64,000 nt of DNA, from the sequence record MW822008.1, one strand, 5' to 3'. Below are positions 1 to 64,000 of this stretch, piece by piece. The notes beneath the pieces are model-generated. The model did no database searches, was not told the DNA's origin, and worked only from the letters and a program-made list of their open reading frames with translations. The position numbers and the translations under genes are program-made. Position 1 is the first letter of the stretch. The number at the start of each line of letters is the position of its first letter.

Positions 1-186
1 GCTAACAAAACTCTAGGAAACTGGACTGCACAGGTTGTTCCTATGGGATATTCTTACACATCTGATGAGGTTCAATTCCTGGCTGAACTATATCGTCAAG
101 TGCCGTTTATCATTAATGTACTAGAAGGTAATGATACATTATCACATGCAGATGTGATTAATTTTCTTGGAAACTTGCATGTGTGA
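1..186 (+). CDS. partial hypothetical protein (5' end outside window)
   Basis: Frame 1 is open from base 1 to TGA at 184-186 and overlaps the next start. Confidence 0.6.
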   Translation, partial: ANKTLGNWTAQVVPMGYSYTSDEVQFLAELYRQVPFIINVLEGNDTLSHADVINFLGNLHV

Positions 187-466
187 TGAAATAAATCTTA
201 CAGGATATTTTTTACAAGAATCAATGATTAAATTTAGTGATAAATTTTCAGTACTGGATGGTATCGAAATGTGGCATGTCAAACCACTGTTCCACACTTT
301 CAGTAAAGAGCACAAAATGTTATTGACTGAAGCCAGTAAATCAAATAACATATGTGAAATCAAAATTGGTGTAAATGTCTATAAAGGGATGGTTATCTTT
401 TTTGACAATAACAGCAACTACTTTTATATTGTTAAGGAGCATTACGTTGACAAATACAAATACTAA
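179..466 (+). CDS. hypothetical protein
   Basis: ORF track 167..466; ATG at 179 overlaps the upstream stop. Confidence 0.6.
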   Translation: MCDEINLTGYFLQESMIKFSDKFSVLDGIEMWHVKPLFHTFSKEHKMLLTEASKSNNICEIKIGVNVYKGMVIFFDNNSNYFYIVKEHYVDKYKY

Positions 467-1067
467 TACATATTTCCGTTATCTTCGATTAGGTCTTTCC
501 CTACGTCCGATCCGTGGAAAGTGCGATTCACTCGCTGACCTTGACTATGCATATGCATTACATCATGAAGGTGTACAGTATGTATTGGGTGATTATGGTG
601 AATTTGAAGAAACAAATGACAGTACTGGAATTAATGCTGGTGTAGAAAATCTTAACAACATTGCTAACAGTTCTCGCCATGACATTGTGTTACAGATTCA
701 AAACTTTATTGAGCAACACACAGGCAAACGTGTTTGGTGCTATGTCGGTACTGATGCACAAATGTCAATTTCATTCGGTAACGATGAAGGATATGTTGCA
801 CAGCTTATTATGGATTTTGAATCTGAAGAGAAGTTTTTAGAATTCAAAGAAAAGATTATTCAGTCACTTGTTGATATGGGTATCCCCGAAGATAAAATGC
901 CAGAAGTTCAAAACATTGATGAATTTGTTTTGATTCCATCTGATGAGAAATATGATGCAATGTTTACTGCTCTTAATATTCCAGGAGTTATTGTGGAGTA
1001 CTTTGATGATGGTGATGATAGTATCTATATCGATCTAGATGACGATGACGATGACGACGATGAATAA
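375..1067 (+). CDS. acidic hypothetical protein; true start uncertain, possibly TTG at 585
   Basis: Long ORF ending in poly-Asp; in-frame TTG at 585 has GAAGGTG about 11 nt upstream. Confidence 0.6.
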   Translation: MSIKGWLSFLTITATTFILLRSITLTNTNTNTYFRYLRLGLSLRPIRGKCDSLADLDYAYALHHEGVQYVLGDYGEFEETNDSTGINAGVENLNNIANSSRHDIVLQIQNFIEQHTGKRVWCYVGTDAQMSISFGNDEGYVAQLIMDFESEEKFLEFKEKIIQSLVDMGIPEDKMPEVQNIDEFVLIPSDEKYDAMFTALNIPGVIVEYFDDGDDSIYIDLDDDDDDDDE

Positions 1068-1072
1068 TGTAC

Positions 1073-1101
1073 ATAGCCCGACATAAGTTCGGGCTATTTT
1101 T
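1073..1101 (+). terminator. rho-independent terminator
   Basis: ATAGCCCGA-loop-TCGGGCTAT followed by a T-run. Confidence 0.85.
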
Positions 1102-1113
1102 GTAAGGGGATAT

Positions 1114-1389
1114 ATGAATTATAAAGTTCTACAATATACATACAGTGTTTTGTTTGATTTACATCACAATGGAAGATATCTCAATACAATACGAGAAAAC
1201 ACATTCACTCATACTATCTGGATTAATCACTTAATAATGATACGTGAATATTTTGTTAATAGTGAGATAATCATTCGTGGTAAAAAACAGAAGATAGAAC
1301 AAGTTAATAGTTTTGGTGGTAAATTAGTACTATCATTTATAGATAGTAATACTAATGAAAGATATAGTATAGATTTGGTGGACATATGA
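1114..1389 (+). CDS. small hypothetical protein, paralog family A
   Basis: N-terminal LQYTYSVLFDL motif shared with neighbours. Confidence 0.75.
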   Translation: MNYKVLQYTYSVLFDLHHNGRYLNTIRENTFTHTIWINHLIMIREYFVNSEIIIRGKKQKIEQVNSFGGKLVLSFIDSNTNERYSIDLVDI

Positions 1390-1652
1390 ATTATAAAGAT
1401 TTCCTACTAACATACAAGATTATTCGAGATTTAGCACACGACAATGATAGCCCTAGTCTAGAAGACACATGCACTGAAATGATTCATACGATTCGTGGTA
1501 AGATTAAAAAAAAATTCAGTACTGTTATTATTGGTGATGACCATGCAGAATTTTCTGATATAATCATTAGACGTGATGGTAAAGTTGAGGTTCAGTACTA
1601 CACTGATTTTGGATTTACCAGTATTCCGTTGGAGATATTCCCTTGGGATTAA
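1386..1652 (+). CDS. small hypothetical protein, paralog family A
   Basis: LLTYKIIRDL motif; ATGA start/stop overlap. Confidence 0.75.
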   Translation: MNYKDFLLTYKIIRDLAHDNDSPSLEDTCTEMIHTIRGKIKKKFSTVIIGDDHAEFSDIIIRRDGKVEVQYYTDFGFTSIPLEIFPWD

Positions 1653-1954
1653 ATTTAAATGATATACAATTCACTTATAAGATCCTATATGATTTGTATG
1701 ATGTATACCTTGTTAGTAACAACATAGGTTCACATAACCGATCCAAAGAACAACCATTTATTGATTTATATATTGAGTACTTAGATTCAGTAGGTGAATA
1801 TATAAAAAAGAATTACAGTACTTTTATCGATGGAAATGATAAATTCGATTTCTATGGTGTACAATCATATAATGGTATAATCCATGTTCAATTTCAGGAA
1901 ATAACCGATAGGGGATTTATCGAGATTAAAGTTGTGAAGTTGGTGAATTTATAA
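1643..1954 (+). CDS. small hypothetical protein, paralog family A
   Basis: NDIQFTYKILYDLY motif. Confidence 0.75.
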   Translation: MGLNLNDIQFTYKILYDLYDVYLVSNNIGSHNRSKEQPFIDLYIEYLDSVGEYIKKNYSTFIDGNDKFDFYGVQSYNGIIHVQFQEITDRGFIEIKVVKLVNL

Positions 1955-1964
1955 GAGGTTACAT

Positions 1965-2276
1965 ATGTTATTAAATGATATACAATTCACATACAAATTT
2001 TTGTATATCCAATACGCTACGGTTGATGCTGGAGAATATCTCTACAGTGAAATCTATCGTTCGGTATGGATAAAGTTTTTGGATGAATTACATGAATATT
2101 ACCATGATTTGTGCATAGTTCGTGATAATAAAATATACAAATTCCGCGATATTGTTAGTCATAGCGGTAAGCTACGATTGGAATTAAGTACTGATAGTGA
2201 TGTTGATTGGATTGGTGTAAATTTACTGGAGTTGGAGAATGAAAAACAACTTAAAGGAAATACAAGTATTTTATAA
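1965..2276 (+). CDS. small hypothetical protein, paralog family A
   Basis: NDIQFTYKFLY motif; GAGG RBS. Confidence 0.8.
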   Translation: MLLNDIQFTYKFLYIQYATVDAGEYLYSEIYRSVWIKFLDELHEYYHDLCIVRDNKIYKFRDIVSHSGKLRLELSTDSDVDWIGVNLLELENEKQLKGNTSIL

Positions 2277-2523
2277 ATTCTTATACTTGTCATATGTAAA
2301 AGATGAGTACTATGAAAGTGTGTATTATTTTTTATGGCAACATTACCGTACTATAGTAAGAGATTTATATATAGGAAAATCTATCATATCCAATGGTGAA
2401 AAATGTATATGTACGGATGTAGTTAGTTTTAATGGTTCTTTAACACTGTGTTTCAGATGCGATAATAATAGTGGGTCATTTTCATTAAACGTATATCAGT
2501 TAGAAGGAATAAATTTTGAATAA
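2239..2523 (+). CDS. small hypothetical protein, paralog family A
   Basis: EIQVFYKFLY and YIGKSI motifs; GGAG RBS. Confidence 0.75.
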   Translation: MKNNLKEIQVFYKFLYLSYVKDEYYESVYYFLWQHYRTIVRDLYIGKSIISNGEKCICTDVVSFNGSLTLCFRCDNNSGSFSLNVYQLEGINFE

Positions 2524-2716
2524 ATGTCCATATTGTAACAGTACTCAATTAGCTCGTTTCCGTTTAGATTCAGACTGGGCGACTGGTGCTGGTGATTTCT
2601 TCCCTATTAATGATGATGCGGAATACACCGAAGAACAGCACAAAGATTTTGATAAATCATGGCGACCTGACATTGAGTGCATTTATTGCCTTAATTGTGA
2701 GCGTGTTCATGACTAA
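2516..2716 (+). CDS. small zinc-ribbon protein
   Basis: CPYC ... CIYCLNC cysteine pairs. Confidence 0.65.
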   Translation: MNKCPYCNSTQLARFRLDSDWATGAGDFFPINDDAEYTEEQHKDFDKSWRPDIECIYCLNCERVHD

Positions 2717-2972
2717 AGCTGAACTAATAGTTCATACATATAAAATGATATCAAGTACTGAGTTATCATATAGTGCAGATAATCCAGTACTGGATTATTT
2801 TGTTGAATTATTGAAAGAGCATTATATTGGTAAATCACTGATTCTTAATAATATTAATTTCACGGTAAAGGATGTAGCACCTGGAAAAAACGTACTAATA
2901 GTATGTGTTACTTCATCTGATAACCCAGTATACCCAATATCAATAATTTTTGAGATATTAGGAGATTTATGA
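2709..2972 (+). CDS. small hypothetical protein, paralog family A
   Basis: VHTYKMI and HYIGKSL motifs; ATG at 2709. Confidence 0.7.
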   Translation: MTKAELIVHTYKMISSTELSYSADNPVLDYFVELLKEHYIGKSLILNNINFTVKDVAPGKNVLIVCVTSSDNPVYPISIIFEILGDL

Positions 2973-3259
2973 ATATCATTTTAATGCAGAAAACATATGC
3001 TATATTGGTGAAAGATTATTCCATTACTTTCGATTCACAAGAAAGTGCTCTACATAACCTATACAAAAACGTAACACAAGAATACAGAAATATGTTTTCT
3101 GACTTAGTAGTAGGAAGGTATTTCAGTACTAGAAAATACCCAAAACTTCAAATAGTTGATGTTTCTTTTTATTTCAATGGTCATATTACTATTCATAGTT
3201 TAGACCAAGATTCAACAACGTACTTAAACTTTTCATTTGATGAGGTAACATTTTTATGA
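2969..3259 (+). CDS. small hypothetical protein, paralog family A
   Basis: QKTYAIL motif; GGAG RBS. Confidence 0.7.
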   Translation: MNIILMQKTYAILVKDYSITFDSQESALHNLYKNVTQEYRNMFSDLVVGRYFSTRKYPKLQIVDVSFYFNGHITIHSLDQDSTTYLNFSFDEVTFL

Positions 3260-3432
3260 GAACAGTATTTTTTATCTGGAGTCTTTTTTCATTGGCAGTA
3301 CTGACAGTATGTGGGATTTGTTTCCTTTCATCAATTAATACTTGGTATATCAATTTACTATTTCCATTTGTCGGTGTTGGTTTAGGGTTTACTTTGCATA
3401 GTGTATGTAAGGATTACAATGAGAACAAATGA
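3256..3432 (+). CDS. small membrane protein (58 aa, below ORF-track cutoff)
   Basis: MRTVFFIWSLFSLAVLTVCG..., two hydrophobic segments; ATGA overlap with the previous gene. Confidence 0.6.
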   Translation: MRTVFFIWSLFSLAVLTVCGICFLSSINTWYINLLFPFVGVGLGFTLHSVCKDYNENK

Positions 3433-3697
3433 AGTACTTATTGCTGAAACAATGAAGATGATTTACAATATCACGTCAGCACAGAATATGCCCTATCCAA
3501 CTAAGTCTTTATTGAGGACTGTGTATCTGGGGATAGTACAGGAGTACTACAAATCCAAGCACCGAAGCATTATTAGTGTTTATCGTGATTATGAAAGGAT
3601 TCGTATTTTATTCTGGAACAAGAATCGAGTACGTTCTGAATGTGACCTAGTGGACTTTAAATTAGAGAATCTTTATTGCTATAAACAGGGACAATAG
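3419..3697 (+). CDS. small hypothetical protein, family A-like
   Basis: ATG at 3419; ETMKMIY motif. Confidence 0.6.
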   Translation: MRTNEVLIAETMKMIYNITSAQNMPYPTKSLLRTVYLGIVQEYYKSKHRSIISVYRDYERIRILFWNKNRVRSECDLVDFKLENLYCYKQGQ

Positions 3698-3746
3698 TTT
3701 AATTCATGATATAATAATGGGTAAGGAACAATAATTAACACAAGGA

Positions 3747-4484
3747 GTGTGTGAAATGCTTGACCGTATCCGTTTCGCTACAGAGATGGCGAATGAATTA
3801 AACATGGCAAATTTCCAAATGTTAACATCAGTAATGGCTGAACATGCATGTGCTTATTCTGTAAGTGGTGTGCAGTGTGGTCAGGAGAATATGTTAGCAG
3901 ATGTTTATAGTGAAGTGCAAAGTAAGCAATATAGTGTGAAGACATATAAGGATAAGTTTGTTAGTCTTTATATGAACGAAGATATTGCCGAAGACCGCAA
4001 ATTCACTGATTTTATTATTGAACGCCGAGTATCAGGTGTATCTAATCCTAATGCATCAAGCGAGGAAGTTTTTGCAGAAGTACTGAAAGATATATACGAA
4101 AATGAATTAAAAAGTAAGAATCATTACAATGTACGTGAAACTAACACAGTGCTCTTGGGATATGATGAAGACGAAGAATACTATTATTTTCGTATGACTG
4201 AAGTTCCTTTTGAATACAAATCTCCATATACAACTACAGTGAAAGAATTTACTGAAAAAAGTAAAAACTTCATGAAGCATGAAGGAAATCGTTGTAGTAT
4301 AAATGGTTATGACGAAAATGGCATTCACATTTATGAGTGGGTTCACCCAAATTGTCAGACATACACTCGTTGCTTGAAAAAACGTTATAATTTAGAAGAG
4401 CATGAATCATTCTATTTTAAAGTTAAGAAGCAAGGTTATACTCGCCCCGCTGATTCTGAATTGTTGGGTATGATATATTTCTAA
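3747..4484 (+). CDS. hypothetical protein
   Basis: 245-aa ORF with AAGGAG RBS, downstream of TGATATAAT at about 3706-3714. Confidence 0.8.
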   Translation: MCEMLDRIRFATEMANELNMANFQMLTSVMAEHACAYSVSGVQCGQENMLADVYSEVQSKQYSVKTYKDKFVSLYMNEDIAEDRKFTDFIIERRVSGVSNPNASSEEVFAEVLKDIYENELKSKNHYNVRETNTVLLGYDEDEEYYYFRMTEVPFEYKSPYTTTVKEFTEKSKNFMKHEGNRCSINGYDENGIHIYEWVHPNCQTYTRCLKKRYNLEEHESFYFKVKKQGYTRPADSELLGMIYF

Positions 4485-4494
4485 GGAAACGGCT

Positions 4495-4776
4495 ATGGAT
4501 TTTTATCTACACACATGGACATACGAACAATATATTACATTATATCTTGAAATTATTAACACAGAACCTAGGTGTGGTTGTTGGTTCGCAGATATCATAA
4601 AAGAGTATGCTGACGAGTTCGAGTTTGTGTATCTTGGGTCTGATATATTTGTAAAAAGTGTAGGTAAAACCGGACGAATCACTGATATAGATTACGACAC
4701 TGTTAGTGTTAATTTCTATGTTGATTTTCCTGATACTGGCGTTGATGGTGTATATTGTCTTTATGAAATAATTTAA
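4495..4776 (+). CDS. hypothetical protein
   Basis: ORF with AAGGA RBS. Confidence 0.7.
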   Translation: MDFYLHTWTYEQYITLYLEIINTEPRCGCWFADIIKEYADEFEFVYLGSDIFVKSVGKTGRITDIDYDTVSVNFYVDFPDTGVDGVYCLYEII

Positions 4777-4783
4777 ATTCTTA

Positions 4784-4807
4784 GGCCAGCGTTTGCTGGT
4801 CTTTTTT
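4784..4807 (+). terminator. rho-independent terminator
   Basis: GGCCAGC-GTTT-GCTGGTC followed by TTTTTT. Confidence 0.75.
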
Positions 4808-4820
4808 CGCAGGTACAAAG

Positions 4821-5123
4821 ATGTTCAGTATAGATTTAATTAACAGTACTATCAAAATGTTGGCTGATTTGGTGAGACAATCCAATGGAACTTTATATCC
4901 ATCAATGTATAAAATGTTTGACCGATACATCAAGGATTGTAACATATCATTATATGGACTTACTGTTGATATAGACGATTACTATGGAATTAATACTTCA
5001 TATAAAACAGGAATTTTAATTGGTATTAATATAAAGATGGGGTATTTCCCTTATTACTGTATAGGATTACCAGATAATACTTTGGTAGAATATCCAGCCA
5101 GTACTATTAAATTAAGAGGATAA
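4821..5123 (+). CDS. hypothetical protein
   Basis: ORF track. Confidence 0.65.
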   Translation: MFSIDLINSTIKMLADLVRQSNGTLYPSMYKMFDRYIKDCNISLYGLTVDIDDYYGINTSYKTGILIGINIKMGYFPYYCIGLPDNTLVEYPASTIKLRG

Positions 5124-5130
5124 AACTAAA

Positions 5131-5709
5131 ATGAATGTATTAGAATTAAGTACTAAGCTGATTAGTATGCGTAATGAGTGGTACGATTGGTTTTATAATG
5201 GTACTGATATGAATTTTTCAAAATATCCATTTATGGAATCAGGATGTGATTCAAGATACCGCTGGTTGAGCAAAAGTGATTCTGGTTTACATATTAGAAT
5301 CGATGATAGTGGTCGAGGAATTATACACGATTTACTTCAAGTTGATCAATTCGTCCATGACAATTGGTGTGATAACGATCCATACCTTGGAAATATGATT
5401 TATATAAGTGAAGATGATTGCGTATTCGTTATCCAGCGACATGGTAATTCTATGTTTTATGTAGCAGACAGCAGTACACCAGAAGGTGCAGCAGCCGATG
5501 GACTTATGCCTAAGATTGATATATTGGAATTTGGATTACCTGAGCACTTCCAGATTAGTACTTTATACGATATTCCACCACTTGAGTTCTTTGAAGAATT
5601 TAAATTGTACTTCAATGATCTTCAAAAATTGAGTACTGATAGACGCATTGAAATAACTGTTAAGTACATGGACGGAACGAAATTAACCGATACGGGGATA
5701 GAATTTTGA
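5131..5709 (+). CDS. hypothetical protein (EHFQ-motif family)
   Basis: LPEHFQISTLYD motif near the C-terminus. Confidence 0.7.
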   Translation: MNVLELSTKLISMRNEWYDWFYNGTDMNFSKYPFMESGCDSRYRWLSKSDSGLHIRIDDSGRGIIHDLLQVDQFVHDNWCDNDPYLGNMIYISEDDCVFVIQRHGNSMFYVADSSTPEGAAADGLMPKIDILEFGLPEHFQISTLYDIPPLEFFEEFKLYFNDLQKLSTDRRIEITVKYMDGTKLTDTGIEF

Positions 5710-6395
5710 TTAAAGATTTAGATAGAATTTTATATGTACTAAGGGGTGTAATTACATTACATCCACAAATCAATCGAATTGAAAGTACATTTCAGTTGGA
5801 GTCAAGAGAAACTCCATATTCACATATATCAAATGTAGTTGGTTCACTCAGTACTGAAGACTCGTCTTACGATATTTGTGTATGTGAAGTACAACCAAGT
5901 TCGGATCTTGGATTTGCTATTTTTGATAAAAATCAAAATCTCATTAGTATGTTTCAGTGCAATAATCCTTTTTGGAAAACATGCCTGTATCCAGAGTGGG
6001 CTATGCTTGATCCAACCAAGAGTACCATTAAAGTTTATGACTCTAAAAATGATGAAGTCGTTATTGATTTAGATGAGTCAATGTCAGAGGAAGAACACTT
6101 TCAGCTAATGATGATGCGTGCTATGCCTGAATACAATGCAATGATTAACACAGTGCAATACATTAAGGATACCATGCCAGCGTTGCGTACACATGAGTTT
6201 TGTCATCCGGTATTGTATGAACATCTAGATTTAGACTTCAGTACTATTAAATTTAAAGATAGTGTTAAAAAATATATTCAAGAGAATGTTAAATTTGATT
6301 TTATTAGTACTATGAACAATAATCCAAAAACTAATTTTAGGCATCAGTACAATGAATCTTTGTCTAATGGACGTGATACCAGTTGGTGGAAATAA
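5706..6395 (+). CDS. hypothetical protein (EHFQ-motif family)
   Basis: MSEEEHFQLMM motif. Confidence 0.7.
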   Translation: MIKDLDRILYVLRGVITLHPQINRIESTFQLESRETPYSHISNVVGSLSTEDSSYDICVCEVQPSSDLGFAIFDKNQNLISMFQCNNPFWKTCLYPEWAMLDPTKSTIKVYDSKNDEVVIDLDESMSEEEHFQLMMMRAMPEYNAMINTVQYIKDTMPALRTHEFCHPVLYEHLDLDFSTIKFKDSVKKYIQENVKFDFISTMNNNPKTNFRHQYNESLSNGRDTSWWK

Positions 6396-6396
6396 T

Positions 6397-6660
6397 ATGA
6401 ATATTCAAGATAGATTACAATTACTGTACACACTTGAACAGGCTGCTTATGATCTTGTTCGAAAAATCTCAGATGAACTACCTAAAGGAACTAAAGTTCG
6501 TGTACGTGAGATGAATTATTTTTCTGGAGTAATTGAAGAACAAGTACTAACAGTGAATAAAGTAACATACTATGAATCTGAGTTGTCTATTCAGTGTGAA
6601 TCTGATGATGGATTAATATCATATTATGGAACTGATGTAGATATAGAGGTAATAAAATGA
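6397..6660 (+). CDS. small hypothetical protein, paralog family B
   Basis: ATG at 6397; helix followed by LPKGTKVRV. Confidence 0.7.
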   Translation: MNIQDRLQLLYTLEQAAYDLVRKISDELPKGTKVRVREMNYFSGVIEEQVLTVNKVTYYESELSIQCESDDGLISYYGTDVDIEVIK

Positions 6661-7799
6661 CCCTTTTGCAAATATATGAAGATTTAATGCACTTATGTAA
6701 TACAAACGATGCATTCTTTTATGTGGATCATAAAAGTCCTGCTGGTGGCACGTATCGTGTATTCAGTTATCGTCTAGCATCATACACTGATTTCATGCAA
6801 CCAAATGCGTTGGAAACCCGTGGCTCTATGTGGGAAATTGATGAAGAAGGTGACATGATACGTTGTGCAGCACGTACAATGAAAAAGTTCTTCAATGCTT
6901 ACGAGAATCCTGCTACAATGTTCCCTGCTAACACCACATGCGATGACATTGCGGTAGTGATGCCTAAGTTGGATGGCTCGATCATCAGTACTTATCGTGA
7001 TAATGATGGTGAGATTCGTTGTAAATCACATACTGCATTGTATTCTGACCATGCGATTAACAGCACTCGACTTATTAACGAGAACCAGAATTTGTATCAG
7101 TACATCGACGAAGCGGAACGTTTAGGTTACACAGTTAATATGGAGTATACAAGCCCAGAGTACCGAATTGTATTACCATATCAGGTAGAACAACTGTTTG
7201 TACTGAACGTTCGTCATCGTGTGAGTGGTGAGTTGCTTTGTGGTAAAGCACTACGTGATAAGTTTCCATGTCTTGCACAGTACAGTACTAATATGACTGG
7301 AAAAGATATTCATCACACTTTTCCGGTACGAAATACCTTCCGTGAAAGCGTGGAGGAAGTTCATAAAATGCTTGATATTGAGGGTTTTGTGTGCATCCTA
7401 AATAATGGGACAATGTGTAAAATAAAGACTGACTGGTACAGTTCATTACATCTTACAAAAGATAGTATTATTATTGATTCTCATTTATATGAAGCAGTAT
7501 TAAATGGTTCAAGTGATGATTTAAAACAATTGTTCAGTACTGATGAATATGCTATGCAAAAGATATTAAGAATGGAACAATTGGTATTTTCGTGCTATAA
7601 TGCATTACAAGATGAAGTAGAAAGCTTCGTCAAGGAACACAAGCACTTGGAGCGAAAGGAATTCGCAATGAAGGTTCAGGAGTGTTTAACTAATGAACTG
7701 AATCGTCAGGGCTTGGCCTTTGCAATGTATAACAATAAGAAAGTTGATTACAAAGAGACTCTTATAAAATACATGAAAATTGTACTAAAGGATTTTTAG
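6657..7799 (+). CDS. rnlA: RNA ligase 1 (T4 Rnl1/gp63-like)
   Basis: KLDGS adenylation motif, RGxMWE, KKFFN, TVNMEY, EGFV and KIKTDWY motifs; 380 aa. Confidence 0.92.
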   Translation: MTLLQIYEDLMHLCNTNDAFFYVDHKSPAGGTYRVFSYRLASYTDFMQPNALETRGSMWEIDEEGDMIRCAARTMKKFFNAYENPATMFPANTTCDDIAVVMPKLDGSIISTYRDNDGEIRCKSHTALYSDHAINSTRLINENQNLYQYIDEAERLGYTVNMEYTSPEYRIVLPYQVEQLFVLNVRHRVSGELLCGKALRDKFPCLAQYSTNMTGKDIHHTFPVRNTFRESVEEVHKMLDIEGFVCILNNGTMCKIKTDWYSSLHLTKDSIIIDSHLYEAVLNGSSDDLKQLFSTDEYAMQKILRMEQLVFSCYNALQDEVESFVKEHKHLERKEFAMKVQECLTNELNRQGLAFAMYNNKKVDYKETLIKYMKIVLKDF

Positions 7800-7826
7800 T
7801 ACTATCTAGCCTAAGCACAAGGAGAA

Positions 7827-8084
7827 GTGATGGCTAAACCTAAGTATAAAAATGACGGTTCCCTTTCTCCGACTGAGTTCAGGAAAATACAAGAAGAAAT
7901 CGATGAATTACAGCACAAACGCTCAATGAAAGGTGTGAAGATAAGTAAGAAACGAATCGAGAATACCTTCGGATGTAGTAGTACTGAATACAAGAAGAAA
8001 AGGAAACCAAAAGGTGTTAAGCCGAGAATACATGATGTAACTCGCTATACATCGAAACGTGAAAATAAATTTGATCCACTATAA
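7827..8084 (+). CDS. small basic hypothetical protein
   Basis: Lys/Arg-rich ORF with AAGGAG RBS. Confidence 0.65.
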   Translation: MMAKPKYKNDGSLSPTEFRKIQEEIDELQHKRSMKGVKISKKRIENTFGCSSTEYKKKRKPKGVKPRIHDVTRYTSKRENKFDPL

Positions 8085-8093
8085 GGAGTTCAT

Positions 8094-8330
8094 ATGAAAG
8101 TTGAAGTTCAGCATAGTATTGTTCAGGATATGTCAGTAGTTAAATTTCTTTCTCTGAAAGATTACTTCAGATGTATCAAGTTCCTAGAAGAATCTCAATT
8201 ACAGTGGACCCCATTAAAGTACAGTTCATCCAATGATACTGCTAGTATTCGTTGTGATGAATCTGTACTTGTGAAAATCTCCAAGCGATTTGGAGTTGGG
8301 AAATATAATGATAAACAATGCACAAAGTAA
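8094..8330 (+). CDS. hypothetical protein
   Basis: AAGGAG RBS. Confidence 0.7.
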   Translation: MKVEVQHSIVQDMSVVKFLSLKDYFRCIKFLEESQLQWTPLKYSSSNDTASIRCDESVLVKISKRFGVGKYNDKQCTK

Positions 8331-8619
8331 TTTACTATATATAAAGTCAGTAGAAGCTGAAATTAAAAATTCAGTACAAACTATCGTCGATGAAATGATT
8401 GACAAATACAAGAGCAATCTTATTGGGAAGAAAGTCAGATGTTGGGATTACACATTCAAACACTGGTACGATTCCGAGATTGTGAAAGTTGATGTGAATA
8501 CTGATAGTAATGGTCTAATTAATGGTATTGCGTATATTGGTGTTTTAATACGCAAGGGAACACCACAGGAATGGCTAACTTATCATAATATAGAGCATGT
8601 TAAATTTTTAGAGGATTAA
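8308..8619 (+). CDS. small hypothetical protein, paralog family B
   Basis: SNLIGKKVRC motif. Confidence 0.7.
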   Translation: MINNAQSNLLYIKSVEAEIKNSVQTIVDEMIDKYKSNLIGKKVRCWDYTFKHWYDSEIVKVDVNTDSNGLINGIAYIGVLIRKGTPQEWLTYHNIEHVKFLED

Positions 8620-8622
8620 AGG

Positions 8623-9555
8623 ATGCCAACTATCACACTAACAGTTGGATTGCCTGGGTGTGGTAAAACTACATGGGCAGTGCAAGAGATTAAAAACGCC
8701 AAATCCAAGACTATCAACATCAACCGTGATGATATTCGTGAATCTATGGCTGGGTCACATGATGCTTACAAATTCAACGATGCTAATGAGCAGTACGTAA
8801 CTAATTTACAGTTCAGTGCAGCAAATTCAGCAGCAGAGAATGGTTGGAACATCATCATATCCGATACAAACCTTAAACAACATTTCCGTAATCTCTGGAA
8901 AGTATGGGCTAAAGATAATGGTTATGATTACAAAGAAAAGAACTTCTATGATGATTTTGTACCTAATGAAGACCGTGGTGCAGATGTTCATGAATTCTTT
9001 AAGATTAAAGAGTTCGTAAAACTTTGTAAGAAATATAACCTCCAGCGTGAGCGTTCAGTACAAGATGATATCATTGACACAATGGCAGATACGTACTATT
9101 ATAGTAAGGCATTACACATTGGTTACTATGGTAATTCACGCGAAGCTGCTATCATCGTTGATATCGATGGAACTCTTGCTCATAAATGGGGTCGTAATCC
9201 TTACGATGAAAGTACTGTTCTTCAGGATACACCTGATGAAGAAGTTATTTTGTCTATTATCGCTGAAGCAGTTTTTCATAAACGCAAGATTATCGTCATG
9301 AGTGGGCGTACTGAAGGGTGTCGTGCTGATACCGAACAGTGGCTTAAGAATTGGGGTGTTCCTTACGATGCATTGTTTATGCGAGATATCGATGATAAAC
9401 GTCCTGATGATGTTGTAAAATTCGACCTGTACATGAAAAATGTGGTTGATCATTACGATGTTAAAAAGGTATATGATGACCGCGATCAAGTTGTATTCAT
9501 GTGGCGTAAGCTACTTGGGTTGAAAGTTTTCCAAGTGGCTGAAGGAAATTTCTAA
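8623..9555 (+). CDS. pseT: polynucleotide 5'-kinase / 3'-phosphatase (T4 PseT-like)
   Basis: N-terminal P-loop GLPGCGKTT, NRDDIRE, SDTNL; C-terminal HAD motif DIDGTLA and DDRDQVV. Confidence 0.93.
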   Translation: MPTITLTVGLPGCGKTTWAVQEIKNAKSKTININRDDIRESMAGSHDAYKFNDANEQYVTNLQFSAANSAAENGWNIIISDTNLKQHFRNLWKVWAKDNGYDYKEKNFYDDFVPNEDRGADVHEFFKIKEFVKLCKKYNLQRERSVQDDIIDTMADTYYYSKALHIGYYGNSREAAIIVDIDGTLAHKWGRNPYDESTVLQDTPDEEVILSIIAEAVFHKRKIIVMSGRTEGCRADTEQWLKNWGVPYDALFMRDIDDKRPDDVVKFDLYMKNVVDHYDVKKVYDDRDQVVFMWRKLLGLKVFQVAEGNF

Positions 9556-9558
9556 TAC

Positions 9559-9590
9559 AAAAGGGATCATATATTGGTCCCTTTTTCTTT
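9559..9590 (+). terminator. rho-independent terminator
   Basis: AAAAGGGATCA-loop-TGGTCCCTTTTT. Confidence 0.8.
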
Positions 9591-9780
9591 TAAGGTACAT
9601 TATAGTGAATGTAACAACACAGATGTTATTACAAAAAGACTACTTAGAAAATATAGAACGATACTATAGATTGTCTTTGTATGAAAATAAGCATAAAAAT
9701 TATAGTTTTGATAAACTACTAAATTCCAGTACTGATGATTATCTATTTTCATCAATGTTTTATGTGAGAGGTTTATTATA

Positions 9781-10041
9781 ATGGATAAATTTCACACAGA
9801 TATAACACAGATAGGTAATCTTATCAATAGTCTAATTACTGATTTAGAAGAAAAGTACTTAGGTCGAAATGTATACGTAGAAATGTATGAAACATATGGT
9901 GTTATTGATATGATTTATTACAGTGCATTGAAGTGTGAAATACGTTTAACAGTATGTTTGTTTGAAAAAAATACATTCAACAGAAGTACTGCAATTCGCC
10001 AAGTTGGAGTTGATGATATAGAATTATACGAGGAACAATGA
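9781..10041 (+). CDS. small hypothetical protein, paralog family B
   Basis: LEEKYLGRNV motif. Confidence 0.7.
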   Translation: MDKFHTDITQIGNLINSLITDLEEKYLGRNVYVEMYETYGVIDMIYYSALKCEIRLTVCLFEKNTFNRSTAIRQVGVDDIELYEEQ

Positions 10042-10292
10042 TGTTTGAGCAGGACTTAGAGATATTCAAAAGTCATATTGATTACTTGACTATATTAGAA
10101 AATGATTTAACTACAAAGTACAAAGGCATTCGTGTTCTGTGCTGGTATGATGATTGGGATTATAAACGTGAACTCACGATTGATCGAATTTATTTCAGTG
10201 ACGGTGTACTAAATGTACATGGTGTAAATGATTTTGGTCATTCATATACATATTCTAATAATGCTAAATTTAAAAGGATCTACAATGAATGA
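10038..10292 (+). CDS. small hypothetical protein, paralog family B
   Basis: LTTKYKGIRV motif. Confidence 0.7.
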   Translation: MMFEQDLEIFKSHIDYLTILENDLTTKYKGIRVLCWYDDWDYKRELTIDRIYFSDGVLNVHGVNDFGHSYTYSNNAKFKRIYNE

Positions 10293-53676: not shown

Positions 53677-53858
53677 TACAAGAAAGTTGCGTCCAAAATT
53701 TGAGAACAAGTACTACTTTGATCGAATAGAGTTAGTACTGAGTGCTGTTGATGAAAAGACCAGCGACCGTTGCATATGACTGCGATAGAGAGAAACCGAG
53801 CAACCCGCTTTCGCTCTCTAAATTTTGGTACAAGAAAGATCCGTCCAAAATTTGAGAA
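53677..53858 (+). repeat. 30-nt direct repeat pair (53677-53706 and 53829-53858, 2 mismatches)
   Basis: TACAAGAAAGTTGCGTCCAAAATTTGAGAA vs TACAAGAAAGATCCGTCCAAAATTTGAGAA. Confidence 0.9.
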
Positions 53859-53894
53859 ATTCGCAATTCGATAATATCCGATGCCATCATCGTC

Positions 53895-53920
53895 AAGAGA
53901 GACTTAATTGTCTCTTTTTT
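53895..53920 (+). terminator. rho-independent terminator
   Basis: AGAGAC-TTAATT-GTCTCT followed by a T-run. Confidence 0.75.
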
Positions 53921-54060
53921 ATTACCTTCATTCCCCTGCGGGGGGATGTAATAGTCCTCAACAAATCCCGTCAAGTTTTTAAAGTACATTATCATTTTCA
54001 GAAGGAACTAGTTTACGAAGTAAACGCAGTGACTTCTTGAGTTACGAGAGAACGAAGTGA

Positions 54061-55994: not shown

Positions 55995-56367
55995 ATTCCA
56001 CCAGCATTGTTCTATACATGAATGTGATGATTGTGGTATACAAATGAGTGACATTTATACAGTTTCCTGTAAAGGTTTCAAATTCACTCACGGTGAACCT
56101 GCTTATTGTTATGGTACAGAAGAAGGTGATATCGAAGTAGTACTGAAAGAATTGTTCCAGTACTTGCAAAGTGTAGGTCATGATGTTACAATACCCACAT
56201 ATTATGAAGATGATTATGATGCACATGTAGAAGAAAATACATATTATAATCAATTCGTTTATGGTAATGGTTTTATCACATACCTACATGAGAATGGTAT
56301 TGAGGTAAAAACTAAGTACACCAGTGATGATTATGATGATGATAATTCTATGGAGATTGTAGATTGA
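55975..56367 (+). CDS. acidic Cys/His hypothetical protein
   Basis: HxCxxC motifs. Confidence 0.65.
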   Translation: MQIKKIKFHQHCSIHECDDCGIQMSDIYTVSCKGFKFTHGEPAYCYGTEEGDIEVVLKELFQYLQSVGHDVTIPTYYEDDYDAHVEENTYYNQFVYGNGFITYLHENGIEVKTKYTSDDYDDDNSMEIVD

Positions 56368-60466: not shown

Positions 60467-60877
60467 ATGATTGAAATGGAAGGAACTCTGGTGTATGATC
60501 CAGATCGTGGCACTATGAAAAAGAAGAAGGACTTCTGGTTAGTACTACAACTTCCATTGCAGTTGGTTCGATACTACCAGTACTTCATCAGAACTAACTT
60601 ACATATTGATATTAAAGACCCACAATGGGGAGCACATGTCAGTATCGTTCGTGGTGAAGTGCCACCAAATCCAGAGTACTGGAAAAAGTACGATGGAATG
60701 AAAGTTAAGATTAAGTTCGATCCTTTCATCGAAGAAGTAAAAGACAATAAGAAACCTGGGTCATTCTTTATCATAGAGTTTGAAGATGATTTCATTGCAC
60801 AAATTCGTGATGAACTTGGTTTAGCATCTAAATATTTCAAATATCACATCACCATTGGTAGAACATACTACGATTAG
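60467..60877 (+). CDS. 2H phosphoesterase
   Basis: Two Hx(S/T) motifs: AHVSIV and YHITIG. Confidence 0.75.
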   Translation: MIEMEGTLVYDPDRGTMKKKKDFWLVLQLPLQLVRYYQYFIRTNLHIDIKDPQWGAHVSIVRGEVPPNPEYWKKYDGMKVKIKFDPFIEEVKDNKKPGSFFIIEFEDDFIAQIRDELGLASKYFKYHITIGRTYYD

Positions 60878-60900
60878 TGTGGATATTTGGTAAATAGGTC

Positions 60901-60928
60901 TTGATATAACTAAAAAGTATGCTATACT
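60901..60928 (+). promoter_or_regulatory. sigma70-type promoter upstream of the lysozyme gene
   Basis: TTGATA-16 nt-TATACT with extended -10 TG. Confidence 0.55.
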
Positions 60929-61044
60929 ACTTAAATGTTCCAAAGAACAACTGAGTACTGTAGAAAGTCCAATGAGGCTTTTGCAAATGGCCTCTTTGCC
61001 CTCTTTGTGATTGCTCATTGTTAACAACCAACAAAGGAGGCGTT

Positions 61045-61971
61045 TTGAAAAAAGCGAAAAAAGCACTGAAAACTAAAATTGCCATAGGCGTGTTAGTTTC
61101 ATCAGCCCTATTCGCTGCGATTGGATTTTATGGTTTTTCTCAAAGTGATCGTGCATCATCATTAGACGAAAGTCAGGTGCATAATTTAAAACCACAAGTT
61201 ACGCAAATTCAAAAGCAGGAACTACCACAGGTATCAGTACCAAAAGCAGTTCCAAGCAGCGAGAAACATTATACGGTTCAACCTGGAGATAGTTATTATT
61301 CTATTGCACAGAAATTTAAACCTAAAAATGTACAGATTGAAGATTATGTCATTTTGTTGAAGAACATCAACTTAAATGCAACTCTTCATACTTCTCAGGG
61401 TATCTTTATCCCAACAAAAGAGGATTTGAAGAACGTATTGTTACCAGATGTGACTGTACTGTTTGATTATAAAGATCCAGAAATTGTCAATCACATCAAA
61501 GAAGCTGAAGGTTCTATTGAATTTCAGTCCAAGAACAAACGACGTTTACTTGGTGGGAAAGTTGGAGTTCCTTTCCACAATTCTAAATTTCATCCCTATA
61601 AGGACATGAAAGGTAATTATACAATTGGTTATGGGCATTATTTGGGTAAGAAAGATTCTGATGCAATGAAGTACAGAAACGGGATTACCAAAGCACAGGC
61701 CAACAAACTTTTAATGCAAGATATGAAAAGGACTTACGAGGACTTTACACTATTGATGCAGAAGAAAGATGCAGTTAATCTGACAAAAGAACAGCAGCGT
61801 ATCCTGTTTGAAATGTCATACACAATGGGCGTTGATAAGTTGGCAACATTTAACAAACTATGGAAAAGTGTTAAAATGGATAACCCTAAGAAATTCAAGA
61901 AAGAAATCATGAATTCCTTGTGGTATCGCCAAGTTACAAACAGAGCGGATTTGTTGTTAAGCTCACTCTAA
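61045..61971 (+). CDS. membrane-anchored LysM + phage lysozyme (GH24-like) muramidase
   Basis: TTG start after AGGAGG; N-terminal TM segment; HYTVQPGDSYYSIAQKF (LysM); KEAEG...YKDMKGNYTIGYGH; MSYTMG; WYRQVTNRA. Confidence 0.85.
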   Translation: MKKAKKALKTKIAIGVLVSSALFAAIGFYGFSQSDRASSLDESQVHNLKPQVTQIQKQELPQVSVPKAVPSSEKHYTVQPGDSYYSIAQKFKPKNVQIEDYVILLKNINLNATLHTSQGIFIPTKEDLKNVLLPDVTVLFDYKDPEIVNHIKEAEGSIEFQSKNKRRLLGGKVGVPFHNSKFHPYKDMKGNYTIGYGHYLGKKDSDAMKYRNGITKAQANKLLMQDMKRTYEDFTLLMQKKDAVNLTKEQQRILFEMSYTMGVDKLATFNKLWKSVKMDNPKKFKKEIMNSLWYRQVTNRADLLLSSL

Positions 61972-62373: not shown

Positions 62374-62790
62374 ATGAATTATGTTTGGGCAGATGTAGTA
62401 AAATCTCTCGTATCAACACATGATGTTGATTTACCAGATAGTCTGGTATTTAACAGATGGTACTATCCAAACCCAGAGGACTGTAACGTTGGAATTGGAT
62501 TTTTTATTAATGATAAATCTAATTTGTTTGGATTAATTGAAGATGAGACAAAATCCAACCTTATATTCTCGATTGAGTTGAATGCTGATCACATAAAATA
62601 CTACACCAATAAAATGGACGAAGACGATGGAGATGTTATAATCCCAGCAGAAATAGACGAAGCTTCATTTTTTCAGTTATCATTGATTTATGATCTATCT
62701 AACATTACTTATGATAATGTGAAAGACCTTTTTATATTGTACAATAAAATGTATAATTACTTTTTAAGACCTTTTTATATTGTACAATAA
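62374..62790 (+). CDS. hypothetical protein (EHFQ-motif family)
   Basis: IDEASFFQLSLIYD; C-terminus altered by a tandem duplication. Confidence 0.7.
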   Translation: MNYVWADVVKSLVSTHDVDLPDSLVFNRWYYPNPEDCNVGIGFFINDKSNLFGLIEDETKSNLIFSIELNADHIKYYTNKMDEDDGDVIIPAEIDEASFFQLSLIYDLSNITYDNVKDLFILYNKMYNYFLRPFYIVQ

Positions 62791-62808
62791 AATGTATAAT
62801 TACTTTTT
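62723..62808 (+). repeat. perfect 43-bp tandem duplication
   Basis: AAGACCTTTTTATATTGTACAATAAAATGTATAATTACTTTTT x2. Confidence 0.92.
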
Positions 62809-62825
62809 ATAACAGAGGAATTGTA

Positions 62826-63011
62826 ATGGAATATACCATATGTGTAATTGTATGTATCATAGCCTTACTCGCAGGAGTTGGTGTGATGATTTACTGTGAT
62901 GCGGAACCAAGTACTGAAGTAGGTACAACCATCACACTTAAACCTGGTGTTAAAATTAATGATACCTATTGCTACAATCCAAACACAAACCGCTATGAGA
63001 TTTGTTTATGA
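62826..63011 (+). CDS. small membrane-anchored protein
   Basis: N-terminal TM segment; GAGG RBS. Confidence 0.65.
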   Translation: MEYTICVIVCIIALLAGVGVMIYCDAEPSTEVGTTITLKPGVKINDTYCYNPNTNRYEICL

Positions 63012-63415
63012 GAACATTCAACATTGATTATATAATTGATTCGATTGCAGAACATATGAAAAACATAAGTAAAAACGAGCCTGGTTTTTACTTCAACTTA
63101 GATAAACTCCATCGCAATACCAATGTATCTAGTTTTAATCGTGCTAAGAAACTTTACATCCGTATACATAACCTTTGGTACAGTGACGATACGTTGATGA
63201 TAGATATTACTGTTGATGAAGACATAACATTAAGATACATTGACGATTTTAAATCAGATGATATTCGTGCTGGATCATTACCAATTGATGCTTCATATGA
63301 AGAATATCTGCAATACCAGTTCATTGATGACACATTTGGATTTGACTTTGATCTATATAATAGTATAATGAACGTATACCATATATACGAAAGGAATTTG
63401 AATGGACATTCGTAA
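63008..63415 (+). CDS. hypothetical protein (EHFQ-motif family)
   Basis: GSLPID...EEYLQYQFIDDTF. Confidence 0.7.
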   Translation: MRTFNIDYIIDSIAEHMKNISKNEPGFYFNLDKLHRNTNVSSFNRAKKLYIRIHNLWYSDDTLMIDITVDEDITLRYIDDFKSDDIRAGSLPIDASYEEYLQYQFIDDTFGFDFDLYNSIMNVYHIYERNLNGHS

Positions 63416-63824
63416 AATACCAAATTTCCACAGTACATTAAGGTTCTTTTCTGAACAAGAAATCAGTACTGAAAGACGTGGCTTGATTTCATACAATCAT
63501 CATCGTGTTATGTACACTAATCATTTCCAGGGTACAGTTCGTATTAAATTTCGTAATGCACTCGACGACAATGATGAATTGTTAATTTTACTACGAAAAA
63601 GTAAGATAGAATTGACATACGCAACTCACCATATTGAAAGTGAGTTGATGTGGCACACACTATCAAAAAAAGAAGGGTCATTACCAGTTGATGATAATGG
63701 ACCAGAAACACTTGATCAGTACATGTTCATTGATGATACATTTAGTATTGACTATCCATCATTTCAGTGTATACTAGCTATACATAAAAAATATTACGAC
63801 CGTCTACGTGACAGATTAATTTAA
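63402..63824 (+). CDS. hypothetical protein (EHFQ-motif family)
   Basis: GSLPVD...ETLDQYMFIDDTF. Confidence 0.7.
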   Translation: MDIRKIPNFHSTLRFFSEQEISTERRGLISYNHHRVMYTNHFQGTVRIKFRNALDDNDELLILLRKSKIELTYATHHIESELMWHTLSKKEGSLPVDDNGPETLDQYMFIDDTFSIDYPSFQCILAIHKKYYDRLRDRLI

Positions 63825-63835
63825 TTGGAGGCATT

Positions 63836-63958
63836 ATGATTGCTATGTTAGAAGAAGATTGGGGTGTTTCCGAGCAAGGCACTGATGAATATGAATACCC
63901 AGAATATAAGCCTAAAGGCTTTTGGGAACGTTTGCGTGATTGGTTGATGGGGGAATAA
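63836..63958 (+). CDS. small hypothetical protein (40 aa)
   Basis: GGAGG RBS. Confidence 0.55.
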   Translation: MIAMLEEDWGVSEQGTDEYEYPEYKPKGFWERLRDWLMGE

Positions 63959-63959
63959 C

Positions 63960-64000
63960 ATGAAAAAGTATTTGGTTGGCGGTTATACGAGAGATCGTTT
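63960..64000 (+). CDS. partial tRNA nucleotidyltransferase (CCA-adding enzyme)-like protein, truncated by window end
   Basis: MKKYLVGGYTRDR resembles the class II NTase N-terminus YLVGGAVRD; only 13 codons visible. Confidence 0.5.
   Translation, partial: MKKYLVGGYTRDR

Follow-up and report, generated by a model that had tools for sequence, protein, structure and literature searches.

The question addressed here was why the six-base palindrome AGTACT, which is also the recognition sequence of ScaI, recurs so densely in the genome of a giant E. coli phage, and whether it acts as a DNA signal. The window analysed was a stretch of 64,000 nucleotides corresponding to bases 62001-126000 of Escherichia phage BF17, a RaK2-like jumbo phage. 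Unless stated otherwise, coordinates are those of the window. The original prediction, made from the sequence alone, stated that AGTACT is iterated throughout the window independently of reading frame, and this observation was confirmed and proved stronger than stated. The window contained exactly 172 AGTACT sites (mean spacing 370 bp), slightly fewer than the 200 or so that had been estimated. The three partial counts of the original prediction were reproduced: 32 sites in bases 1-8000 (for example at 250, 621, 997 and 1326), a stretch with about 20 small + strand ORFs; 19 sites at 37882-43923 (+ strand), a block of two ~900-aa ORFs (tail / minor tail protein in the annotation of relatives) with a small ORF between them; and 3 sites (53517, 53709 and 53734) at 53371-54060 (+ strand), a 690-bp gap with no annotated CDS that is probably a non-coding RNA gene. 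The longest AGTACT-free interval (49398-50861, between sites at 49392 and 50862, 1470 bp apart) was located inside the third large tail-like ORF.

Expected counts were obtained with several null models. In 100 dinucleotide shuffles, 17.1 +/- 4.2 sites (maximum 27) were obtained, and Markov models of orders 0-3 gave 21.5, 16.9, 30.1 and 56.2. The order-4 value of 143 only shows that the pentamers AGTAC and GTACT are themselves inflated. Codon-aware nulls gave 52.0 +/- 4.9 sites for a synonymous shuffle within genes, 80.7 +/- 6.4 for a third-base shuffle that preserved amino acids, codon usage and junction dinucleotides, and 35.3 +/- 4.8 for a codon-order shuffle; the observed count was 14-28 standard deviations above these. 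AGTACT was the top hexamer of all 4096 and the only enriched 6-bp palindrome (observed/expected ratio of 10.2, compared with 1.41 for the next), and 28 other 6-bp palindromes were absent. The two outcomes named beforehand as refuting the observation, a ratio near 1 under such nulls or equal enrichment of many unrelated palindromes, were therefore not obtained.

Sites were found in all three frames (79 AGT-ACT, 29 xAG-TAC-Txx and 52 xxA-GTA-CTx), with 12 sites outside called genes, and the non-coding density (2.5/kb) was about the same as the coding density (2.7/kb). The sites filled 43-62% of the positions that synonymous codons allow: 76 of 122 Ser-Thr dipeptides were encoded by AGT-ACT (17 expected), 30 of 69 [KQE]-Y-[FLSYCW] contexts carried the site (4.3 expected), as did 54 of 120 x-V-L contexts (9.9 expected). 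Ser-Thr (122 against 84) and Val-Leu (162 against 110) dipeptides were themselves in excess. An artefact of codon usage, dipeptide content, base composition or dispersed repeats is thus refuted, although AGT, ACT, GTA and TAC are common codons in this AT-rich genome. The extended preference was H-AGTACT-D, with C at -1, G at +1, T-rich positions -2/-3 and A-rich positions +2/+3; CAGTACTG occurred 41 times (0.74 expected) and the best form, TCAGTACTGA, 11 times (0.08 expected). Information content was about zero beyond +/-3, so the sites are not parts of longer repeats. The flanks were symmetric: C/A at -1 mirrored G/T at +1, T-rich -2/-3 mirrored A-rich +2/+3, and G at -1 and C at +1 were rare in every AGTACT-rich lineage.

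The whole BF17 genome contained 1069 sites in 375 kb and every 10-kb bin was enriched, but the density was about three times higher in the 20.5-kb terminal repeats (57-71 sites per 10 kb). The repeat carried 109 promoter-like sites (67 +/- 8 in shuffles), including ten perfect 12/12 matches on the + strand. Of 53 strong promoter-like sites, 29 carried AGTACT at offsets -5 and +15 from the start of the -35 element, while some terminal-repeat promoters lacked the site altogether. The same placement was found in the window at 22887-22915 (+ strand), where a sigma70-like promoter (TTGACT, 17-nt spacer, TATTAT) carries AGTACT at 22903-22908 in the spacer, just 5' of the -10 element, upstream of the CDS at 22951-23559. 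However, about 93% of the window sites were intragenic without promoter hexamers. Terminal-repeat genes are early genes in the related phage PA5oct, according to RNA-seq (PMC7318152). Among close pairs of sites genome-wide, spacings of 20-23 bp formed the main peak, exemplified by an intragenic pair at 56139-56164 (20 bp apart, two helical turns). Sites were also conserved in position: in comparison with phage JNE01 (76% nucleotide identity), 51 of 84 aligned sites (60.7%) were intact, against 27.4 +/- 4.4% for same-phase hexamers within 60 nt, with 33 BF17-only and 49 JNE01-only sites.

Relatives were compared over partial sequences of about 40 kb each. Four RaK2-like genera showed 8-13x enrichment, whereas PA5oct had no site (14.3 expected), Atu_ph07 was neutral, and so was a T4-like coliphage (0.6x). 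An unrelated ~32-kb prophage family of Yersinia, Leclercia, Pantoea and Edwardsiella showed 6-16x enrichment, but its E. coli relative (prophage L140) had 0 sites against 3.5 expected and its Enterobacter relative 1 against 4.0. In the parts compared, the two rich lineages shared almost no genes (only a lysozyme and HNH-type endonucleases), no methyltransferase and no plausible reader gene. The sharing of the trait by the RaK2-like clade, its convergence in unrelated prophages, its reversal to near-total avoidance in sister lineages and its concentration in the terminal repeats had not been foreseen in the original prediction, and no prior description of the phenomenon was found.

We tentatively propose that AGTACT is a positively selected, cis-acting site in duplex DNA, read as a dyad-symmetric site by a lineage-specific, phage-encoded protein that binds as a dimer. 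With one site per ~0.4 kb, and one per ~0.15 kb in the terminal repeats that carry the early genes, the phage chromosome would be a high-avidity lattice for that protein. In the near-consensus sigma70 promoters of the repeats, one site abuts the -35 element (about -40 to -35) and the other lies just 5' of the -10 element (about -20 to -15); they are 20 bp apart, on one face of the helix, so that occupancy would switch early promoters. Elsewhere, the lattice would mark, coat or organise the phage's own DNA, although a benefit of coating coding DNA is conjecture. What the analysis demonstrates is the enrichment and its independence of coding, selection at the synonymous and amino-acid levels, positional conservation with turnover, the promoter placement, the clade distribution, the convergence in an unrelated prophage family and the lack of a detectable shared methyltransferase or reader gene; that the reader is a protein, that it is phage-encoded and dimeric, that it binds AGTACT and that it represses or coats are inferences. 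The symmetric flanks fit recognition of double-stranded DNA by a two-fold symmetric protein, and a phage-encoded reader is favoured because the trait follows phage lineage rather than host, E. coli phages falling in both classes (BF17 at 10x, L140 at 0 sites). No reader was identified in BF17 or in any RaK2-like phage. In the prophage family, the only candidate was a 48-64 aa ribbon-helix-helix (RHH)-like protein, the only non-structural ORF family found in AGTACT-rich loci (four of the five) and in neither poor locus. The RHH class binds short palindromes as dimers, but the assignment is weak (Pfam E=0.002, below the curated cut-off), no AGTACT operator was seen in front of its own gene, and an HMM of the family found nothing among RaK2-like ORFs. 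A symmetric dimer also does not predict an 8.3-kb island elsewhere in BF17 (BF17 28375-36672), which carries only the non-palindromic variant AGTACA, 51 times on one strand and never on the other.

The original interpretation, a HIP1-like marking system that could be a binding lattice for a phage protein or the footprint of a methylase-coupled repair drive, was partly supported. Frame independence, the failure of codon bias to explain the motif, the resemblance to HIP1 as a highly iterated palindrome under selection, and the binding lattice as the best reading, to which fixed placement in early promoters and positional conservation now add support, were supported; the repair drive was not, and a neutral footprint of biased repair or gene conversion is very unlikely. 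Conservation of sites could also arise from biased correction, but none of the 18 one-mismatch neighbours of AGTACT was depleted (observed/expected 0.7-2.8; 1.06 and 1.32 for the deamination products AGTATT and AATACT), lost sites showed no dominant single change, amino-acid dipeptides were shifted, the rich prophage family showed no methyltransferase-type ORF in about 32 kb, and sister lineages avoid the site instead of drifting towards it. That the sites are protected from restriction, as the original prediction implied, is likewise an inference: published digests of a close relative (PMC13070987) did not include ScaI or RsaI. An epigenetic mark, in which AGTACT would be the target of a small phage N6-adenine methyltransferase and the dense methyl marks would serve as a self label or as a replication- or time-dependent switch of early promoters, is a somewhat better but still unlikely alternative. 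By motif scan, BF17 encodes only two methyltransferase-type ORFs. One, a small putative N6-adenine methyltransferase (PF05869 / TIGR01712; BF17 60839-61360, just upstream of the window), has orthologues in all four AGTACT-rich genera (Asteriusvirus at 90% identity or more, Klebsiella RaK2-like at 63-67%, Eneladusvirus at 42% and GAP32 at 41%), and the paper on PA5oct never mentions a methyltransferase. Placing methylatable sites in the -35 and -10 regions is a known way to couple promoters to methylation state, established for GATC in E. coli. However, no ORF with methyltransferase motif IV or PCQ was found in about 32 kb of the rich prophage family, so methylation by a phage enzyme cannot be the general cause; characterised members of the PF05869 family are known to act on GATC, and methylation alone gives no reason for a tenfold excess of sites. 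The three other methyltransferases of the Yersinia phage have no BF17 homologue, and the C5 enzyme was not seen among the Mimasvirus or Eneladusvirus rows.

Recruitment or titration by low-GC phages of an Enterobacterales protein that recognises AGTACT is also unlikely. Both rich lineages infect Enterobacterales, they share almost no genes, and the related Pseudomonas and Agrobacterium phages lack the trait, but the trait is bimodal within E. coli itself, and the host protein SlmA, whose site GTGAGTACTCAC has AGTACT as its core and requires G1, T2, A4 and G5 (PMC3020112), does not fit. The window had no match to the 12-bp palindrome GTRAGYRCTYAC even with one mismatch allowed, and G was found in only 18 of 172 sites at -1 (the rarest flank) and in 24 of 172 at -3. 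It is less likely still that the unit is 5'-(C)AGTAC-3' read on one strand, as RNA or as single-stranded DNA by a translocating enzyme in the manner of Chi, the palindrome simply supplying the signal on both strands. The AGTACA island has no TGTACT and no AGTACT, carries its AGTACA sites in all frames and in non-coding DNA, with the same flanks, and is shared by 121Q and EC.P1, and site density is highest near the DNA ends. Against this, the flank preferences are dyad-symmetric, the genes of the island run in the same direction as their palindrome-rich neighbours, so that direction of transcription does not separate them, and AGTACA sites are only weakly conserved in position (56% against 43%). 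A Chi surrogate is not needed, because the phage carries genuine Chi (GCTGGTGG) in large excess (24 + 15 sites against about 3.3 expected, 10 of them in the terminal repeat).

Among described systems, HIP1, the palindrome GCGATCGC of cyanobacteria, is similar in that it occurs about once per 0.3-1 kb in all frames and in non-coding DNA, far above compositional expectation, is maintained over evolutionary time and has no settled function. AGTACT differs in sequence and length (a hexamer core), in its carriers (phages and prophages of Enterobacterales instead of cellular chromosomes), in the absence of a demonstrable link to a cognate methyltransferase such as has been proposed in the literature for HIP1, in its reversal to avoidance in sister lineages, and in its concentration in terminal repeats and presence in promoters. 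Chi, KOPS and uptake sequences are likewise genome-wide over-represented words acting as self labels for a DNA-processing machine, but they are asymmetric and strand-oriented, and no translocase or uptake system is implicated here. SlmA sites and similar nucleoid-occlusion or sequestration lattices such as Noc and SeqA-GATC are dispersed palindromic sites through which a dimeric protein turns a whole chromosome into a platform, but cellular lattices have tens of sites per Mb, compared with about 2700 per Mb here. Operators of RHH repressors (Arc, MetJ, CopG class) and prophage-encoded silencers that coat their own element involve short dyad-symmetric sites read by small dimers, as is proposed here for AGTACT, with repression from sites overlapping the -35 and -10 elements, and an RHH-like ~50-aa protein, a putative reader, marks the AGTACT-rich prophages; classical operators, however, number a few per genome, not hundreds inside coding sequence. 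Finally, the near-total avoidance in PA5oct and in the E. coli and Enterobacter prophages looks like ordinary avoidance of a ScaI-type restriction-modification site, whereas enrichment is the opposite of what restriction pressure produces; no ScaI-like nuclease or cognate methyltransferase was identified, in a BF17 proteome that was not scanned as a whole against Pfam.

AGTACT thus looks like an undescribed DNA signal. In a broader reading, which the evidence allows but which we regard as doubtful, phages of Enterobacterales would carry a previously unrecognised kind of self-marking system, in which a short palindrome is driven to near-saturation across the whole genome and is read by small, fast-evolving phage-encoded proteins. 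Such a system would have arisen or spread independently in a jumbo virulent lineage and in a small temperate lineage, and the purging of the same word by sister lineages would imply an AGTACT-directed activity circulating among these phages and their hosts.

The window corresponded to positions 62001-126000 (+ strand, 100% identity) of Escherichia phage BF17 (MW822008.1, Asteriusvirus), a RaK2-like jumbo myovirus with a 383,493-bp record. Nearly all genes are on the + strand and most are hypothetical. The rest of BF17 was read in separate pieces (L003-L009) that were not joined.

The window contained 172 AGTACT sites, and the iteration of this palindrome described in the original prediction was confirmed and extended. 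The site counts of that prediction were exact: 32 sites in bases 1-8000, 19 in the block 37882-43923 and 3 in the gap 53371-54060. Dinucleotide shuffles gave 17.1 +/- 4.2 sites (maximum 27) and Markov models of orders 0-3 gave 17-56. Three codon-aware nulls were also used: a synonymous shuffle within genes, a third-base shuffle that keeps amino acids, codon usage and junction dinucleotides, and a codon-order shuffle. These gave 35-81 sites, 14-28 sd below the observed count, and an artefact of codon usage, dipeptide content or composition was rejected with the four shuffle nulls. Sites were found in all three frames (79, 29 and 52), with 12 outside called genes, and the non-coding density was about the same as the coding density.

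AGTACT was the top hexamer of all 4096 and the only enriched palindrome, with an observed/expected ratio (O/E) of 10.2 against 1.41 for the next. Palindrome avoidance was otherwise extreme: 28 of the 64 six-bp palindromes, all of them GC-containing, were absent from the window, GCGC occurred 0 times against 27 expected, GGCC 9 against 39 and GATC 93 against 194. Between 23 and 30 six-bp palindromes were absent from the ~40-kb pieces of RaK2-like relatives. The DNA therefore bears the usual marks of restriction avoidance, with one striking exception. The flanks extend the dyad: C is favoured at -1 and G at +1, G at -1 and C at +1 are disfavoured, -2/-3 is T-rich and +2/+3 is A-rich. Beyond these positions the flanks carried no information, and a dispersed repeat was rejected for this reason.

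The strength of selection was assessed from the coding sequences and from a comparison with a relative. Of the Ser-Thr dipeptides, 62% are written AGT-ACT, against 14% expected from codon usage, and the other two frames reach 43% and 45%, against 6% and 8% expected. Ser-Thr and Val-Leu dipeptides were themselves about 1.5x over-represented, relative to amino-acid frequencies and to the reversed dipeptides. Against phage JNE01 (76% nucleotide identity over 32 kb), 60.7% of the aligned sites were intact, compared with 27.4 +/- 4.4% of same-phase hexamers within 60 nt, and many lineage-specific sites showed turnover at constant density. The BF17 tRNA set (L007:19991-24077, BF17 295991-300077) consists of Ser(GCU), Ser(UGA), Met, Asn and two Thr(UGU). 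Ser(GCU) reads AGT and Thr(UGU) may read ACT, the two codons of the commonest in-frame form of the motif, and GAP32 and XbC2 also carry Ser(GCU) and Thr(UGU).

BF17 carried 1069 sites in 375 kb, and every 10-kb bin was enriched. The ~20.5-kb direct terminal repeats carried 57-71 sites per 10 kb, three times the genome average. The repeat is an array of small genes, most of which (L003:1-20000) share a module: a near-consensus sigma70 promoter, a conserved G-rich/C-rich 5'-UTR hairpin (GGGGA...TCCCC type), a Shine-Dalgarno sequence and ATG. Ten perfect 12/12 promoter matches were found, all on the + strand. AGTACT occupied two preferred positions, 20 bp apart: one overlaps the first T of the -35 element (AGTACTTGCAA) and the other lies just 5' of the -10 element (AGTACTGTATAAT). 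Some otherwise similar promoters had a one-mismatch variant or no site, and in the window only a few sites were promoter-associated (for example 22887-22915). Just inside the right terminal repeat (L008:32000-36000, BF17 about 358-362 kb), a local cluster of 30 AGTACT and 12 TGTACT in 4 kb was found in a region of sparse small ORFs and long non-coding stretches. Spacing was not regular genome-wide: the coefficient of variation was 0.78 in the window, and 1.12 over the non-repeat genome against 1.00 +/- 0.03 for random placement, the latter driven by one 8.3-kb gap.

This gap is an island at BF17 28375-36672 (L003), about 25 kb upstream of the window, with sharp borders. It contained no AGTACT, but it contained 51 copies of the non-palindromic variant AGTACA on the + strand (about 6/kb; frames 16/15/14, 6 non-coding) and none of the complement TGTACT. 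The island is shared by relatives at 93% and 80% identity, in 121Q (L018, about 4000-11000) and EC.P1 (L019, about 2000-10500), with only weak positional conservation. Ten of its ORFs had no Pfam match. Within the window, the 690-bp gap at 53371-54060 has no CDS, starts with a TATAAT-like box, ends with a hairpin plus T-run and has two ~30-nt internal direct repeats. Positions 53707-53973 were the only part of window 32001-57000 that megablast aligned (77-78%) to GAP32, XbC2 and Erwinia phage Kaldavass. The gap is a candidate conserved non-coding RNA, with no Rfam match at E<=0.1.

The distribution of the motif among other phages was examined in pieces of about 40 kb. Observed/expected counts were 136/14.7 in JNE01, 97/9.8 in GAP32 (Mimasvirus), 109/11.6 in XbC2, 113/8.5 in fHe-Yen9-04 (Eneladusvirus) and 80/10.0 in RaK2 (Alcyoneusvirus). 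In contrast, the count was 0/14.3 in PA5oct (capsid 66% identical), where AGTACT is by far the most strongly avoided palindrome while GTAC is normal, 3/5.2 in Atu_ph07 and 5/7.9 in the T4-like RB32. A scan of IMG/VR for three clustered sites recovered RaK2-like contigs and a second, unrelated lineage: contigs of about 32 kb encoding a lambda-GpA-type terminase, portal, HK97-type capsid-protease, tape measure and J-type tail fibre. Most other IMG/VR hits with clustered sites were tandem repeats in coding sequence or intergenic heptamer arrays, and not genome-wide enrichment. One unrelated viral contig (L087, IMG/VR 3300008266_000492, GC 0.50) carried intergenic tandem arrays of the heptamer AGTACTT (5 or more copies) and related AGTACT clusters at 3171-3290 and 6378-6443, which look like iterons or operators built on the same hexamer.

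Relatives of the second lineage are prophages with a large serine recombinase in Enterobacterales. Counts against shuffle means were 76/6.6 in Leclercia, 71/4.4 in Yersinia enterocolitica, 58/4.1 in Edwardsiella tarda, 52/6.4 in a metagenomic relative and 44/7.6 in Pantoea agglomerans, but 0/3.5 in an E. coli member of the same family (L140) and 1/4.0 in an Enterobacter hormaechei member (L144). The rich prophages also have low GC content (0.35-0.39) and lack 17-27 palindromes. The trait is therefore bimodal, follows phage lineage rather than host species, and is convergent. In the AGTACT-poor sister lineages (PA5oct 65850-107025, L140 and L144), the top hexamer was CTGCTG/TGCTGC. In L140, CTGCTG occurred 29 times on the + strand and 2 on the - strand, against 5.9 expected in total, including inside minus-strand genes. 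This oriented, enriched word, the complement of which is the EcoP15I site, may be an alternative to AGTACT. The prophage family also carries variable cargo in its early region that looks like defence genes: a reverse transcriptase (RVT_1) in locus L141 (7180-8457), a TIR-domain protein in L140 (2129-3025), and an AAA_21/AAA_15 ATPase next to an HNH protein in L144 (4620-5795).

Candidate readers of the motif were sought among methyltransferases and among genes that distinguish rich from poor loci. Only two methyltransferase-type ORFs were found in BF17 with regular expressions for methyltransferase motifs. One is a PF05869/TIGR01712 phage N6-adenine enzyme just upstream of the window, with orthologues in all four rich genera. 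The other is a compact, 286-aa predicted C5 cytosine enzyme (L007:9394-10254, BF17 285394-286254), annotated as HaeIII-like in relatives. Its best solved-structure relatives over the full length are the DNMT3A/3B catalytic domains (E=1e-23), which rank ahead of M.HhaI and M.HaeIII. The C5 enzyme was seen only in Asteriusvirus and Klebsiella RaK2-like rows and was rejected as the clade marker, and the methyltransferases of the Yersinia phage were rejected as shared readers because they have no BF17 homologues. Pfam searches of 30 ORFs (next to the methyltransferase, at the window start, in the AGTACA island and in the prophage early region) gave a weak ribbon-helix-helix (RHH) match as the only hit of note. 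When rich and poor prophage loci were compared, one non-structural family was found only in rich ones: a 48-64 aa protein with an RHH pattern, present in four of the five rich loci (Pfam RHH_1, E=0.002, below the cut-off), with 24 homologues, all in enterobacterial prophage-type contigs. Its HMM found nothing in RaK2-like ORFs, and this protein is a lead rather than a finding. A promoter of the type TGAAAC-N(14-20)-TATAAT lies in front of the RHH-like gene in loci L139 (2468-2496), L141 (2851-2879) and L143 (742-770), with one more copy in L145 (710-738). The same unusual -35 element was reported for the RaK2-like phages CBB and GAP32 (PMC5259590). It occurred 4, 3 and 2 times in the GAP32, XbC2 and Yen9-04 pieces (L010, L011, L014), against about 0.15 expected by a rough estimate, and was not found in the BF17 pieces with this exact pattern.

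The interpretation given in the original prediction was partly supported: its binding-lattice idea survives as the best explanation, and its methylase-coupled repair drive does not, because none of the 18 one-mismatch neighbours of AGTACT was depleted. We favour, tentatively, a phage-encoded, dimeric, sequence-specific DNA-binding reader that would use the sites as early-promoter operators and as a genome-wide self lattice. What the analysis demonstrates is selection on the DNA word, whereas the identity of the reader, its binding and its action are inferred. No description of the motif was found in the papers on RaK2-like phages that were read or in full-text searches, and no paper combined AGTACT with jumbo phages.

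The alternatives were less well supported. A methylation mark is compatible with the presence of the N6-adenine enzyme in all four rich genera. Virion DNA of fEgEco12, a close relative of BF17, is cut as predicted by ten enzymes, which did not include ScaI or RsaI, so there is no global base modification (PMC13070987). However, the rich prophage lineage, essentially complete in L139 plus L074, has no methyltransferase-type ORF (motif IV or PCQ) in about 32 kb, and by blastp and phmmer it shares only a lysozyme domain and HNH-type endonucleases with RaK2-like phages. A common phage methyltransferase therefore cannot be the general cause. Among host factors, SlmA is the only protein known to us with an AGTACT core in its site (PMC3020112), but it requires outer bases that the phage sites lack, and the window had 0 matches with one mismatch or fewer. 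Searches intended to give the host AGTACT frequency returned no blastn match for nrdD in E. coli genomes and no relative of NrdA among the genome contigs searched. A Chi-like role is unlikely, because genuine Chi (GCTGGTGG) is itself over-represented in BF17 (L003-L008) and concentrated in the terminal repeats, with 24 copies on the + strand and 15 on the - strand in 375 kb, against about 1.8 and 1.5 expected (order 1). Ten of these lie in the 20.5-kb terminal repeat, including a convergent pair about 0.6 kb from the left end, and the window contains copies at 6741-6748(+), 14417-14424(+), 50301-50308(-) and 55998-56005(-). The oriented AGTACA island is not predicted by a symmetric dimer, and it keeps a strand-read mechanism alive as a rival.

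Phage genomes typically lose palindromes under restriction pressure. Here, one palindrome is instead pushed to about half of all positions that synonymous codons allow, at a measurable cost in amino-acid choice, while 28 others are purged from the same DNA. It is conserved across four genera of jumbo phages, recurs in an unrelated prophage family and is purged in the sister lineage of each. None of the hundreds of unannotated genes of these phages has been tied to the motif, which gives a direct handle for finding its reader because a 10-mer probe sequence (TCAGTACTGA, with TCAGTACAGA for comparison) and a natural negative-control variant (AGTACA) are now defined. ScaI and RsaI should cut these genomes into hundreds of fragments unless the sites are modified, which is a simple diagnostic. 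The system also offers a tractable phage-sized model for the long-open question of what highly iterated palindromes are for. A signal under that much selection must be read by something important for infection, such as a switch for early promoters, a self/non-self label or a chromosome organiser.
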